Positions 38,341 through 43,532 of a stretch of 64,000 bases of DNA are shown here, in pieces. Every line of letters starts with the position of its first letter. Position 1 is the stretch's first letter. The notes beneath the pieces were generated by a model. That model worked only from the letters and a program-made list of their open reading frames with translations. It had not been told where the DNA came from and made no database searches. This DNA is from Camelus ferus (lineage: Eukaryota). The stretch covers positions 48,732,001-48,796,000 of the forward strand of contig NC_045711.1 of NCBI RefSeq assembly GCF_009834535.1, read 5' to 3'. The translations under genes were made by a program, and so were the position numbers.

Positions 38341-38523
38341 GGACCAGGGGTCACAGGATCAGTGTTCCGAGACACCACCAGGGCCCTGGCAAGACAGCTG
38401 GGCTGCCTCATTTTTGCTGTCTGCTTCTGGCCCTTCTGCCTGATCCAGAGGAAAGGGGGACCCGCTATGTCAAGACCAACCTCTCCCAGCTGGATGAGCC
38501 GGAGCCAGGAATAAAGCAGCCGG
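38341..38523 (+). pseudogene. Gasdermin relic, exon 2 homologue
   Basis: GSVFRDTTRALARQLG-CLIFAVCFWPFCLIQRK / frameshift / TRYVKTNLSQLDEPEPGIKQP(g|gt) vs adjacent GSDMA MTMFENVTRALVRQL...RFHPFCLVLRK...ARYVHTDYTLLDVLEPGSSPS(g|gt). No ATG. Confidence 0.9.
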
Positions 38524-39696
38524 GTACCAAGAGAGCTCAGCCACATGCCTGGTCCAGCTCGGAAGCAAAAACCTAGGAAGGCAGGCCCCAGCTTGTCACC
38601 TCCAGGCAGCACCCTGGAGCCAGCGGGCAGTGGGTAGGGGTGGGAGGAGAGGAGAGCCCCTCACTCAGCCCTTCTGCCACCAGCTTCTTCCTGCCCTCTG
38701 GAGGGAAGCTGGAGCGGTAGAGAAAGCAGATGCTGCCCTCCCTCAGGGTGCCCCAGTCTGAGGAGGAGAGATGTGACCCTAAGTCCCAGGGAACCCCCAG
38801 ACTAATGGAAGAAATAGAGTCCTTTCTCTTTGGGGAGCTCTGAACCTGGTGAGATTAAGACATCCCTCAGACAAAGACTGAAGCACCTCCAAAGCCTGGT
38901 TCTCCACCAAAGGAAATAAAGCAAGAACAAACTGAACACACAGGAGCTGAGGGAGGCAGTTAAGAGCGGCAGGTGGGGCCCAGCCCCCACCCTTCCTGTG
39001 CTGGGCTCATGTGCAGACATTGCAAGTGCCACGTGAATGAGGGGAGGTCAGCATCAAAACCGGAAGAACCCAGGCAGCTCCTTCCAAGCACTTCCCCCAT
39101 TAGACTATGAGGAGTTCCAATCGGAAGCAGTTTCCCCTTGTCTCTCTGGGACTCTGTCATCAGCAACCTCACCTGCCTCTGAGGAATGAGTTCCCAAACC
39201 AGGAAGGCAGAACACAAAGCAGACAGACAAAGGCGTCTGAGCTGTCAAAACAGATCCCACCACTAGTCCATGCATTCAACAAACATTTATTGAGTTACTA
39301 CTACGTGCCAGAACCTGCAGATACAAAGATAAAGAAGTTGTGGAGCCCATCCTCGGGGACCTGACAGTTAGTGTATCAATGATGGCGGCCCAGAGGACAG
39401 AGGCGTGCACTGGGGCCATGTGAGCCTAGAAGGGGCATCTAAAGCAAACACTCACTAAGGTTCAGGTACTTGGTTCACAGGAGCACTTAGAACCCATTTA
39501 TTTTACCCATTTTTTAAAATCTTATTTTACACTGAGTTCCAATAATTTTGTATCTCTGGTTTCCCACATACAACAGGATAGAAGCAGTATATGTGAAGAT
39601 ATACAGACACACAGACAGAACAACAGCAGTAAGAAACAACAGCCTGGCAGCAGGGCGGGCCATTATTAAAAGAATTTATAAGAACTCAAAAAAGCA

Positions 39697-39832
39697 GGTG
39701 TGGTGGTGTATAGCTCAGTGGTAGAACGCATGCTTGGCATGCACAAGGTCCTGGGTTCAATCCCCAGTGCCTTCATTAAAGGGGTAAAATAAAATAAAAT
39801 ATTTAAAAAACCAAATCACTGTTAAAAAGAAA
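39697..39832 (+). mobile_element. Vic-1-like SINE with 14-bp TSD, in the first intron of the gasdermin relic
   Basis: TSD aactcaaaaaagca at 39683-39696 and 39833-39846. Confidence 0.9.
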
Positions 39833-40488
39833 AACTCAAAAAAGCACACAGTAGGGCATTTTACTGTCTTCTAAATGGCCCTGTGGGGACAAATGATTCT
39901 CCTCACCTCCAGAGGGCCAATGGACATTGGCAAAATGCATAATACTAATGTCATGGACTTTTGACTTACCTGTAAAAAGAGGTCAAATCTTGGAGCGTCC
40001 ACTCTCAGGGACAGGAAGCAGGTGATGCATTTGAGAAAGTTTCCCTCCAATCAGGGCAGAAGTTAACGATGCGGAAAGATGGTGGAGAAAAGGCTCATTC
40101 CACCTGGCCTGCCTCCTGCCTCCTTCCTCCCATGGCACCAAGGTCTGGCCTGGGGCTGTGTCGAGTAGTTCCCATCTCTCTTGCACACAACAGCCCTCTG
40201 GATGGGTGAAGACGGCTCTGGAGTCTCCAGCACAAGTCAGCACATCATGGTCTTTCTCTGTTCTTGTCTCTCTGTCCCTATTTAATGTCCCACAATCACC
40301 ACCGCACCCACGCACTTGCCTCAGGTCCCTGGAATCCAGTTTATCTCCATCCGGTCACAATACTCATTTCTGCACTTATGACAATTACTATCCTCCTCTT
40401 TCAGAACATTCAAAAAAAAAAAAAAAACACCTCAAGAATGCATATTAAACTAATGTCTGAGGTCAGCCTTCAATTCTCATTCATTTAG

Positions 40489-40726
40489 GGAGTCACAGGC
40501 AATTTATCATGCAGAGTCAAACCATCAAGGATGGTTCCCTCAAGGGATGTGTGGGAACAAGCATAGGGCATTGTGTCTGCCCTAAAGAACTGGGAAAAGA
40601 CTCCGAGATCACCCAGGCTGCAGCCGTAGAGCTCCTGGTGAATATCTCCGTCACAGTCAGCAGCCAATGTCATCCTGGACATCGAAAACCTCAGCACTGC
40701 AGAAGATCTGGAAAACCTAAGAAGAG
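40489..40726 (+). pseudogene. Gasdermin relic, exon 3 homologue
   Basis: tttag| acceptor; VTGNL, KDGSLKGCV and, after a 1-nt shift, NVILDIENLSTAEDLENLR vs GSDMA NSTLEVQTLSVAPTALESL. Donor apparently decayed (AG|GGGAGC). Confidence 0.75.
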
Positions 40727-40950
40727 GGGAGCTGCAGAGTGGGGTAGGGAGGCAGGTTGAGGACTCCAGGCCAGCCAAGGGGGCTGGAACTAAGAGACAT
40801 GCCCTGACCTAAAGTTGCACAGGCTGTCAGAGCTGGCAGGGATCTTCATTTTACAAAAGAGCCCAGAGAGGGATGGTGAGTTGTCCAAGGTCACACAGGG
40901 AGTCAGGGAAAAAACAGGACTAGAACCCACAGACCCCCTGTCCTTTTGAG

Positions 40951-40973
40951 ACACACACACACACACACACACA
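40951..40973. repeat. (CA)n microsatellite, about 11 units
   Basis: Read directly. Confidence 0.9.
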
Positions 40974-41084
40974 CTCCTCTTCCAAGGGAATGGGTTGAGG
41001 GAGGGGTAGATGGAGACGATGGTGGACTCGGAGATGCAACCAAGGGAGCTGGACACAGGCAGGAAGAGAGCCCCACCCACTCAG

Positions 41085-41249
41085 AGCCAGCTCCACCCCA
41101 CCCAGCTGAAGAAGCTTCAGGAGCATGGGGAGAACCTATCCATACATGGTGACCGAGGCTGTGAAGATGCTGAAGGAAGCCACCCTGGAGGTAGGGAGCA
41201 AGATTGAAGGAGCCATTCCATCTCCCTTCTGACTGCTGCTGGGTTAAAA
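41085..41249 (+). pseudogene. Gasdermin relic, exon 4 homologue
   Basis: LKKLQEHGENL(+4 nt)YMVTEAVKMLKEATLEVGSKIEGAIPSPF(-1 nt)GLK|gt vs GSDMA LKEMRSERMNLYVVMEVVETVQEVTLERASKADGCFSLPIFAPLGLQ|gt; 165 vs 166 nt. Confidence 0.9.
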
Positions 41250-41812: not shown

Positions 41813-41918
41813 GGTCGGTCCCCCCTGCCTCGGGGCTGAAATCTGGGCGATCAGGGTGTTCTATTCCTCTTTAGGGTCTGTTCCCAAAACCAGCTGGTGA
41901 TCTACAGCCCCTCCACAG
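41813..41918 (+). pseudogene. Gasdermin relic, exon 5 homologue
   Basis: G.......*......LFLFRVCSQNQLVIYSPST(g|gt) vs GSDMA ILAFRVRQLMVKGKDEW(g|gt); phase 0 to 1; in-frame TGA at 41837-41839. Confidence 0.6.
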
Positions 41919-42088
41919 GTTCCTCCCAACCCCTTCAGTGTGGCTCCCTAGTGCCTGCACCTCCCACCACTCCTCCCCGCTCAGAGACCACCCTATGTAG
42001 GCCTATGTGGTGAGGGGAGCCGGCCAGAACAGGCCAGGAAGAGTCAGGGAATCAGTGACAGCCAGTGATCCATTTCTGACCCCCACAG

Positions 42089-42137
42089 ACATCCTCCCAA
42101 CTCAAAGACCAGAATCTAAAAATGTCCCCCTCTGAAG
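42089..42137 (+). pseudogene. Gasdermin relic, exon 6 homologue
   Basis: ccccacag|(g)ac atc ctc cca...tct gaa g|gtgaga; begins D-I like GSDMA exon 6 and ends SE|g like GSDMB PE|g; 49 nt vs 48 nt in GSDMA. Confidence 0.65.
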
Positions 42138-42825
42138 GTGAGAGAAGCTAAAGGACTCTTCTCCCTCCCACCCCATAATGTGATGAGGGCAGTCGGACAA
42201 AGTCTTAGAAGGTGAGGACACAAAGACACCACTCCCCCGCCTTCTCCAGCAAAGGAAAGAAACCAGCCCACTGAGGAACACAAGCCTGGAGCCCTTTCTC
42301 AAAACCATGACAGGATGGTGGGTGGGATGCAGAGGGGTCTCTCTGACTTTGACATGACGTAGTGATGCTGGGGATCCCAGCCACAGGTTTGGTTTCTTGG
42401 GCTTTTAAGTACATCCTCCCCCTGCCCCCAGCCTCCACCACACTCTTCTAGGTGTGATGAGTCTGGACCCACCCAGGGCTGCACCACGGGGCAGGCGGAC
42501 CCTTCTTCCCTAGAGGCTCTCTGTCCTCCATCTCCGTCTATCACAGTCACCCTTGGTCCCTTTCGAGTCTGCAACATCCTCAACTCCATCGAAAAATACT
42601 GTTAGGAGTTGAATTCCCCTGTCACTCCACACCAGCCCCTGCCCTGATCCTCTTTCCCTGGAGAGGGGTACCTGAGGGAGGCACAGGACACCAAGGCCCA
42701 GAAGGAGGACTCTGTGCCTGGGGTGGGGGGCCCTCTGGGTGAAGTTATGTGGAGGCAGGAGGAGCAGGGTATGGTCCTCGTTACCACTGTCCTCTACGCA
42801 AAGCTCTGGGCCTGAGCCGGTCCCC

Positions 42826-42980
42826 TGGGAGCCCACAGGGTTTCGGTAGCTGCAGGCTGAGGTGGAGGAGGAGCTGCTGTAGCTTAAGGGCCTGACCCGG
42901 AACAGCGGACGGAGGGGCTGAGGGAAGGATTGGCACGACTGGGTCAGGCCCTGAGGCCCAGGAGCTGTGGGACATAGCGG
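42826..42980 (+). pseudogene. Gasdermin relic, exon 9 homologue (start of C-terminal domain)
   Basis: GFR*LQAEVEEELL*LKGLTR / fs / EQRTEGLREGLARL...QELWDI vs GSDMA DFRTLKEEVQRKTHEVEKLSP...KELEDL and human GSDMD FQGLRAEVETISKELELLDR. Confidence 0.8.
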
Positions 42981-43260
42981 GGGCGGGGCTGCGGCGGAGT
43001 GGGCGGGACTGCAGGAGTCTTGGGGCGAGGTGATAGAGACTTCCGGAGCACGCTAGAGTGGTGACTGCAGTCCTGCGGGGCGAGAGGCGGGGCTTAAAAC
43101 GTCTAGGGGGAGGAGTCGGGAGATGGGGAGGGGCTAAACTGGTGAGGGCTAGACCTGCGCGCCGGAGGCGGGGCTACGAGCCGTAGGAGCCAGATGCAGG
43201 CTGAATGGGGCGTGACTGGCCTCCTATTCAGGGAGCTGTCATCCAGCATGTCCACTCGTC
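42880..43260. promoter_or_regulatory. Small CpG-rich island with clustered GC boxes
   Basis: Several GGGCGGGG/GGCGGGGC motifs (about 42981, 43001, 43086, 43146) and many CpGs in an otherwise CpG-poor region. Confidence 0.6.
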
Positions 43261-43378
43261 CACTCGAGGAAGGCCTCTTTACGCTAAGAGAGACTGGGCT
43301 CCTGCCCTGAGGAGGGGATCTCCCTGTCTCTCTAACCGTTGAAGTATCTAGCTGATCACTTCCCATCTCTCTGTCAAG

Positions 43379-43532
43379 TAGATGGGACCCTAGATTTTAA
43401 CAAGCCATAGGTTCTGAGAGTTTCGGGGCGGGGGGCGCATGGTCTGAGTCCTCGAATGACTGCAGGAGACTTCTAGCAAACTCAATTCCATACTGACTGG
43501 GCACATCTTCTACCTGCTGGAGGCTCTGGGTG
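43379..43532 (+). pseudogene. Gasdermin relic, exon 10 homologue
   Basis: Polypyrimidine acceptor ..tctctctgtcaag|; (L)DGTLD vs GSDMA LEGALD; VLE*LQETSSKLNSILTGHIFYLLEALG(g|gtgagg) vs GSDMA GAILYFLGALT(g|gtgagt) and human GSDMD VLECLVLSSGMLVPELAIPVVYLLGALT. Confidence 0.88.

Follow-up and report, generated by a model that had tools for sequence, protein, structure and literature searches.

A decayed gasdermin gene between LRRC3C and GSDMA of Camelus ferus and its gasdermin-A-like relatives in other therian mammals

Gasdermins execute pyroptosis, and their family tree informs the evolution of inflammatory cell death. Here we analyse a gasdermin-like element in 64,000 nucleotides (nt) of Camelus ferus DNA (NCBI RefSeq assembly GCF_009834535.1, contig NC_045711.1, positions 48,732,001 to 48,796,000 of the forward strand), a stretch that we call the window. 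The window is free of N bases and carries, in order, GSDMB on the minus strand, LRRC3C on the plus strand, the element and GSDMA, both also on the plus strand, and the start of PSMD3 at ~61.1 kilobases (kb). An earlier note on this DNA described seven blocks in the element as collinear counterparts of gasdermin exons 2, 3, 4, 5, 6, 9 and 10, and the peptide strings that it quoted are all present in plus-strand translations. We found that six of the blocks (exons 2, 3, 4, 6, 9 and 10) resemble gasdermin exons far above chance and that the block called exon 5 is placed by position only. The element, which we refer to as the relic, also extends past the previously given end at 43532, to 43816 (Table 1).

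Searches within the window connect the relic with its neighbours. In tblastn searches with the relic pieces, exon 2 matched exon 2 of GSDMA (E = 1.5e-5) and of GSDMB (E = 0.003), the 3' part of exon 2 matched the adjacent part of GSDMA exon 2 (E = 0.012), and exon 4 matched GSDMA exon 4 (E = 0.001). Profile searches covered 3263 stop-free pieces of the window. A profile of GSDMA, GSDMB, GSDMC, GSDMD and non-mammalian GSDMA, built without the "gasdermin-A-like" (hereafter A-like) clade described below, matched exons 2, 4 (E = 0.0015) and 10 in collinear order, with one stray match elsewhere (E = 3.3). A profile of the A-like clade matched seven collinear pieces (exons 2a, 2b, 3, 4a, 4b, 9b and 10), with E-values of 1e-5 for exon 2a, 0.076 for exon 3, 1.1e-5 for exon 4b and 0.0022 for exon 10, and among the 3263 pieces it had no match beyond the relic, GSDMA and GSDMB. 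The feature itself, which the earlier note had tied to a collinear alignment of this kind, is thus borne out by both profiles.

The relic retains parts of both gasdermin domains and of the gasdermin exon structure. Exons 2, 3 and 4 match the family profiles collinearly in the N-terminal pore-forming domain (PF04598), while homology to the C-terminal repressor domain (PF17708) is partial: exons 9 and 10 correspond to the start and middle of Gasdermin_C, and the last two exons of this domain are deleted. Conserved splice sites include the exon 2 donor G|GT, which interrupts the same codon as in GSDMA and in the elephant shrew Elephantulus edwardii, the acceptor and donor of exon 6, and the donor of exon 10. 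Agreement of exon ends and phases with GSDMA, as claimed before, holds at these three exons.

Disabling lesions are spread along the relic. The start codon is lost, with ACA at 38353-38355 where Elephantulus has ATG, and exon 2, whose donor is retained, also carries a 1-nt deletion that shifts the frame and three deletions that do not (27, 3 and 15 nt). In total, we counted at least five in-frame stops, ~11 frameshifting insertions or deletions, the lost start codon and a deletion of ~1.75 kb; the missing ATG, the exon 2 frameshift, the 4-nt insertion in exon 4 and the stops in exons 9 and 10 had already been reported correctly. The large deletion leaves 108 nt of the window (43609-43717) in place of ~1.85 kb in the Elephantulus locus (L001 17259-19110). 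Its edges are defined by blastn alignments of L001 17102-17259 with window 43447-43609 and of L001 19110-19200 with window 43717-43807, and exons 11 and 12 were not found anywhere in window 38000-48000. Beyond the junction lies a remnant of the C-terminal extension found in A-like proteins, whose peptide matches the C-terminus of an opossum A-like protein (P0015). The relic cannot encode a gasdermin, and the copy in the window is a pseudogene.

Table 1. Coordinates in the window of the relic, its parts and the flanking genes. Identities and scores are from local DNA alignments with the Elephantulus exons.
Feature	Position	Strand	Observations
Whole relic	38333-43816	+	Decayed gasdermin
Pseudo-exon 2 (N-terminal start, pore-forming domain)	38333..38522	+	78% identity; score 118 (null maximum 30)
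Pseudo-exon 3	40615..40740	+	75% identity; score 98; alignable in 3' two thirds only; 5-nt and 1-nt deletions
Pseudo-exon 4	41094..41250	+	80% identity; score 143; 4-nt insertion ~41138, 1-nt deletion ~41217
Possible pseudo-exon 5	41825..41900	+	Position only
Pseudo-exon 6 (linker)	42088..42136	+	79% identity; score 42 (null maximum 24); 1-nt insertion; acceptor and donor conserved
Pseudo-exon 9 (start of C-terminal repressor domain)	42784..42985	+	Score 106; stops 42847, 42880; two 1-nt deletions
GC-box-rich, CpG-island-like stretch	42880..43260		3' part of pseudo-exon 9 into the intron before exon 10
Pseudo-exon 10	43381..43532	+	75% identity; score 113; stops 43408, 43457; insertions/deletions -2, -2, +8; donor retained
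Deletion junction	43609..43717	+	~1.75 kb gone, with exons 11 and 12 and the greater part of the C-terminal extension
End of the C-terminal extension (last 26 codons and stop region)	43717..43816	+	82% identity; score 117 (null maximum 26); stop 43732
LRRC3C coding exon	34828..35592	+	Upstream anchor, outside the relic; 254-amino-acid open reading frame with LRR_8 matches
Intact GSDMA	48654..58240	+	Downstream anchor, outside the relic; ATG 48654, last exon ends near 58240
GSDMB exon 2	14681-14917	-	Beyond ORMDL3 and LRRC3C

Intact relatives of the relic came from a profile of exon 2 (alignment A1) in which window GSDMA, window GSDMB and two pseudo-exon 2 pieces formed separate rows. Searched against 1.84 billion representative proteins, this profile recovered 165 family members, and the best 150 of the 165 were aligned to the window with tblastn. 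A true GSDMA (P0007) scored 783 bits on the GSDMA gene versus 53 on the relic. Three proteins matched the relic far better than GSDMA, with 49-67% identity over exons 2, 3, 4, 9 and 10: XP_006889541.1 of Elephantulus edwardii (P0013) and two proteins of the opossum Monodelphis domestica (P0015 and P0017), all named "gasdermin-A-like". A search with P0013 returned relatives at 54-66% identity in dugong, Amazonian manatee, several Monodelphis paralogues, Petaurus, Gracilinanus and Antechinus; both sirenian entries are flagged LOW QUALITY PROTEIN. Identity to P0013 is 38-42% for true GSDMA and ~30-34% for GSDMD and GSDMC.

The Elephantulus gene occupies the position of the relic. Its locus contains, in order, a leucine-rich repeat (LRR) gene, the A-like gasdermin and a 445-amino-acid gasdermin, GSDMA, and the dugong locus has the same order. 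By blastn, the Elephantulus locus and the window are collinear from LRRC3C, which is 81% identical to the LRR gene, through every pseudo-exon and into GSDMA. The Elephantulus A-like gene has open exons 2-6 and 9-12, including a terminal exon of 272 codons. In marsupials we found several full-length A-like copies, and the Gasdermin and Gasdermin_C domains of P0015 are complete (2-238 of 240 and 2-170 of 172, respectively). These findings bear out two proposals of the earlier note, namely that an extra gasdermin paralogue once stood between LRRC3C and GSDMA, as the collinear Elephantulus gene in this slot indicates, and that an intact copy may survive in other mammals, as indicated by the complete marsupial proteins and the open Elephantulus exons. 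The opossum locus of P0176 has no neighbouring gene within 10 kb from which to read synteny.

A-like proteins differ from GSDMA in having a long C-terminal extension. The opossum and sugar-glider A-like proteins are 667-669 residues long, and ~215 of these residues follow Gasdermin_C and contain no Pfam domain. Such a tail is annotated in marsupial proteins only; the terminal exon of Elephantulus, however, stays open over 272 codons and can be aligned colinearly with the opossum protein up to the last residue (E = 5e-62). In the window, the last 26 codons of this clade-specific extension of ~200 residues are all that is left of it. The intact A-like gene, by its predicted protein, encodes a full gasdermin with an N-terminal pore-forming domain, a linker and a C-terminal repressor domain, and in addition the extension. 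The linker of the opossum protein (P0015 residues ~225-245; alignment A2 columns 270-290) contains FLSSD followed by G, and that of one paralogue contains FESDE. We take FLSSD|G and FESDE to resemble the caspase-1 cleavage motifs of GSDMD, which makes them a lead and not a result.

To place the A-like proteins we used two trees, a quick one of 62 sequences and a careful one of 36; the window pieces were kept out of the trees and scored separately. The A-like clade has full support (100/100), its afrotherian and marsupial subclades mirror the species tree, and it is the sister of eutherian GSDMA (89/91). The "GSDMA" proteins of alligator, birds, caecilian and skate form an outgroup clade, and marsupial GSDMB and GSDMD-like proteins fall in their expected places. 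Forcing eutherian GSDMA and the afrotherian A-like proteins together costs 66 log-likelihood units and is rejected by the approximately unbiased (AU) test (p-AU = 1.7e-6). A duplication inside Eutheria is thereby rejected, and the split must therefore predate the divergence of marsupials and eutherians. We also asked whether the A-like clade could be orthologous to the GSDMA of birds, reptiles and amphibians, which, if true, would have explained the same-locus paralogy puzzle of PMC10948149; this was rejected, since the clade groups with eutherian GSDMA inside the mammalian GSDMA-D group, apart from the non-mammalian clade.

The pieces of the relic score highest against A-like proteins. Summed over pieces, scores are 597 for afrotherian A-like, 518 for marsupial A-like and 399 for eutherian GSDMA, followed by GSDMD (385), non-mammalian GSDMA (367), GSDMC (343) and GSDMB (330), and GSDMA proteins rank below A-like proteins for every informative piece. 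On these similarity scores, the ranking is the order expected of a eutherian orthologue of the A-like genes. Between the relic and the neighbouring GSDMA we detected no intron similarity, and exon similarity (73-81%) over 31-56 nt only. The distance of the relic from GSDMA is mostly old paralogy and not the decay of a GSDMA copy. The two lineages also differ in pace: eutherian GSDMA is highly conserved, with the elephant protein 84-90% identical to those of rodents, carnivores, bats and primates, and the A-like lineage evolves much faster, with Elephantulus and dugong 73% identical.

We compared the relic with the 10 kb upstream of GSDMA in armadillo, elephant, aardvark, dog and squirrel monkey, and with the dugong A-like locus. 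A-like exons bearing stops and frameshifts are recognisable in all six. Exons 11 and 12 are present in each of these species, and the ~1.75 kb deletion is therefore specific to the lineage of the camel. Armadillo, elephant, aardvark and dugong have different lesions. The same premature stop, a CAG>TAG change at codon 7 of the terminal exon (L011:3021 and L012:1865; alignment A3), occurs in both dog and squirrel monkey; armadillo and the afrotherians retain CAG at this codon. A single inactivation in the boreoeutherian ancestor probably accounts for this shared stop, and separate losses in Xenarthra and within Afrotheria would be the simplest reading of the differing lesions. Identity to Elephantulus at the three codon positions is 0.76/0.80/0.72 in the relic and, in GSDMA, 0.86/0.90/0.67, a comparison that agrees with long neutral decay of the relic.

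The dugong A-like gene (P0175 and P0177; L010 6001-13800) is open in part. Its exons 2-6 and 11 are open, there is no ATG at the ancestral start, and it has frameshifts in exons 9 and 10 and in the terminal exon and stops in the extension. Sirenians seem to be losing the A-like gene more recently than other eutherians did.

Together, these data make it very probable that a distinct therian gasdermin, provisionally "GSDMA-like", had its ancestral slot between LRRC3C and GSDMA, and that the relic at 38333-43816 is what decay has left of its eutherian orthologue, a unitary pseudogene. By the tree and the AU test, the A-like lineage split from the GSDMA lineage before the marsupial-eutherian divergence. 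In the history that we propose, the gene stayed coding and multiplied in marsupials, apparently stayed coding in the elephant shrew, and was inactivated several times in eutherians. If one loss took place in the boreoeutherian common ancestor, as is probable, then the gene has been dead in the camel lineage for tens of millions of years. Over that time stops and frameshifts accumulated in the camel copy, its start codon disappeared and its last exons were deleted. Intact orthologues, going by their membership of the family, would be autoinhibited by the C-terminal domain, and the N-terminal domain, once released by cleavage in the linker, would oligomerise and form membrane pores.

Several observations weigh against this reading or parts of it. 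The exon 5 block lies within the null (DNA score 24 against a null maximum of 26, with none of the three frames beating shuffled peptides), and we keep it as a positional guess because the spacing between exons 4 and 6 matches that of Elephantulus; exon 5 is undetectable in the dog relic as well. Exons 7 and 8 were never located. Support for the sister relationship of the A-like clade and eutherian GSDMA is only moderate. The sampled trees contain no marsupial sequence in the clade of GSDMA proper, and the best 120 matches in a search with elephant GSDMA are all eutherian; the A-like genes may therefore be the "GSDMA" of marsupials, with GSDMA proper either lost there or unsampled. The dating of the loss to the boreoeutherian ancestor depends on a single C>T change common to dog and squirrel monkey, which could have arisen in parallel; deletion of the exon prevents the scoring of the camel for the codon 7 stop.

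The status of the Elephantulus gene calls for similar care, since it is apparently intact as judged by open reading frames and splice sites, and its RefSeq model, XP_006889541.1 (L001 10001-24251; JH947206.1), is mis-spliced. The model uses the last 26 codons of a fully open exon 3, skips exon 6, and leaves the terminal exon before a 198-codon open extension to enter a spurious exon 5.5 kb downstream, in the upstream region of GSDMA. This spurious last exon explains an odd tblastn match of the last 32 residues of P0013 at window 46894-46989, a candidate final exon that we rejected as lying in the conserved GSDMA upstream region.

A different kind of objection is that the protein gene is lost and yet the relic hosts a live non-coding function, such as a promoter in a CpG island, an enhancer or a non-coding RNA with a possible effect on GSDMA; this would account for the parts of the relic that can still be recognised. 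In the stretch at 42880-43260, GC content is 0.66 and the observed/expected CpG ratio is 0.68, versus 0.24 for the whole relic, and four of the seven GGCGGGRC sites in the window lie there in a cluster of GC boxes at which no tandem repeats were found. The homologous intron is likewise GC- and CpG-rich in elephant, aardvark, dugong, armadillo and squirrel monkey (L007, L008, L009, L010 and L012), five eutherians in which the gene is broken. With a CpG-island-like element conserved across eutherians, part of the locus may therefore keep a non-coding function, and by its base composition 42880-43260 may be a live promoter or regulatory island; the high identity of the 3'-end block to Elephantulus points the same way. 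Against this, exon identities of 69-82% fit near-neutral decay over tens of millions of years when the partner is constrained, and we regard a live function as unlikely. Such a function would in any case add to the pseudogene explanation and would not replace it.

Other origins for the relic fare worse. Serial duplication of GSDMA to GSDMB, then GSDMC, then GSDMD, as proposed in PMC10948149, makes it conceivable that the locus still holds a leftover of a local progenitor of GSDMC and GSDMD, a copy that Billman et al. infer to have arisen from GSDMA and then moved to another chromosome. Both trees, however, group the A-like clade with GSDMA and not with GSDMC and GSDMD, and the relic pieces score lower with GSDMC and GSDMD than with GSDMA and lower still than with A-like proteins, so we hold this origin to be very improbable. 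Even less credible in our view is a tandem duplicate of GSDMA that arose in the camel lineage, like mouse Gsdma2 and Gsdma3, and decayed neutrally. The relic does adjoin GSDMA on the same strand, its exons 2 and 4 resemble those of GSDMA, and tandem duplication is known in mouse (PMC8742441); but its pieces are closer to the A-like proteins of elephant shrew and marsupials than to the GSDMA 5 kb away, it shares no intron similarity with that gene, it is collinear with the Elephantulus A-like gene down to a relic of the extension that GSDMA lacks, and six other eutherians have relics in the same position.

Finally, GC-rich intergenic DNA might resemble gasdermin exons by chance. A Pfam scan of ten single relic pieces gave no gasdermin match, and sequence searches of the PDB with single pieces were non-significant (for exon 2 the top match was Gasdermin-A3 at E = 0.82; exon 4 had none). 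The Pfam negatives are uninformative, because an intact 62-amino-acid exon of Elephantulus is also invisible to the same scan. Set against collinear profile matches, DNA scores of 42-143 versus null maxima of 24-34, conserved splice sites and orthologous relics in other species, chance carries practically no weight as an explanation.

The A-like lineage can be set beside the known gasdermins of this neighbourhood. The A-like proteins of Monodelphis (A0A5F8GGQ7 / XP_007482353), Petaurus, Gracilinanus, Antechinus, Elephantulus (XP_006889541.1) and sirenians represent the lineage orthologous to the relic: they are closest to it piece by piece, and those of Elephantulus and dugong share its slot. 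They differ in being coding (nearly so in sirenians) and are automatic predictions only, whereas the relic is broken. Eutherian GSDMA, the sister lineage, has the same two-domain architecture and the same phases at exons 2, 6 and 10, but it is only 38-42% identical to the A-like clade and has no C-terminal extension, and it is the A-like gene that has been lost repeatedly. Mouse Gsdma2 and Gsdma3 are likewise extra gasdermins of the LRRC3C-PSMD3 interval (PMC8742441); unlike the A-like lineage, which predates the marsupial-eutherian split, they are young, confined to mouse and almost identical to Gsdma. GSDMB is, like the A-like gene, an old GSDMA-derived paralogue of the same neighbourhood that has been lost in some mammals, but GSDMB forms a clade of its own (100/100), has the lowest relic score, and is encoded on the opposite strand, with ORMDL3 and LRRC3C between it and the relic.

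Published accounts give mammals the gasdermins GSDMA-E and PJVK and place a single ancestral GSDMA in the LRRC3C-PSMD3 interval (PMC8742441, PMC10948149). Both describe the LRRC3C-GSDMA-PSMD3 synteny and the mouse triplication, with no further paralogue, and the supplements of PMC10948149 contain none of the A-like accessions or species. A 2026 study of monotreme and marsupial inflammasome genes reports GSDMD-like duplicates only (PMC13076529). In a literature search that did not include most subscription journals, we found no paper that uses "gasdermin-A-like" or treats the clade as a separate member; matches to "GSDMAL" concerned Gsdma-LacZ alleles. The description of the relic as an "unrecognised" family member in the earlier note therefore stands for the papers we found and not for the databases, as NCBI and UniProt catalogue orthologues from Elephantulus, dugong, manatee and several marsupials as predicted "gasdermin-A-like" proteins.

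More broadly, and with slightly less than even confidence, we suggest from these comparisons that the therian ancestor may have had one gasdermin beyond GSDMA-E and PJVK, a sister of GSDMA with an extension of ~200 residues. This gene would remain functional in sengis and in the marsupials, in which it has multiplied, and would have been lost independently in Boreoeutheria, Xenarthra and most Afrotheria, leaving relics upstream of primate GSDMA. It would be hidden under the label "gasdermin-A-like" and may be the GSDMA of marsupial studies, and its FLSSD|G linker may make it caspase-activated. An additional old paralogue in the LRRC3C-PSMD3 interval alters the history of gasdermin gene gain and loss, and calls for caution in treating the "GSDMA" of marsupials and eutherian GSDMA as orthologues, which they may not be. 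The clade also offers for study a natural variant, a gasdermin with a long C-terminal tail. For annotation, it accounts for gasdermin-like open reading frame fragments upstream of eutherian GSDMA and reveals at least one mis-spliced RefSeq model, that of Elephantulus. For the camel itself the relic is ordinary, a long-dead gene; the interest lies in its branch of the family, which appears under-recognised.

Some further features of the window lie around the relic. The exact LRRC3C protein of the window is also recorded in GCA_000311805.2 (scaffold KB016554.1). Upstream of GSDMA, a block at 46582-47896 is conserved (65% identity to Elephantulus over 1.3 kb) and probably represents the promoter or the 5' exon region of GSDMA. 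Copies of a tRNA-derived short interspersed nuclear element are present at 48-121, 5595-5642, 9578-9665, 39690-39799, 50747-50807, 51820-51927 and 57693-57758, the copy at 39690-39799 sitting in the intron between pseudo-exons 2 and 3, and (AC)n microsatellites occur at 40951-40974 and 46742-46777.

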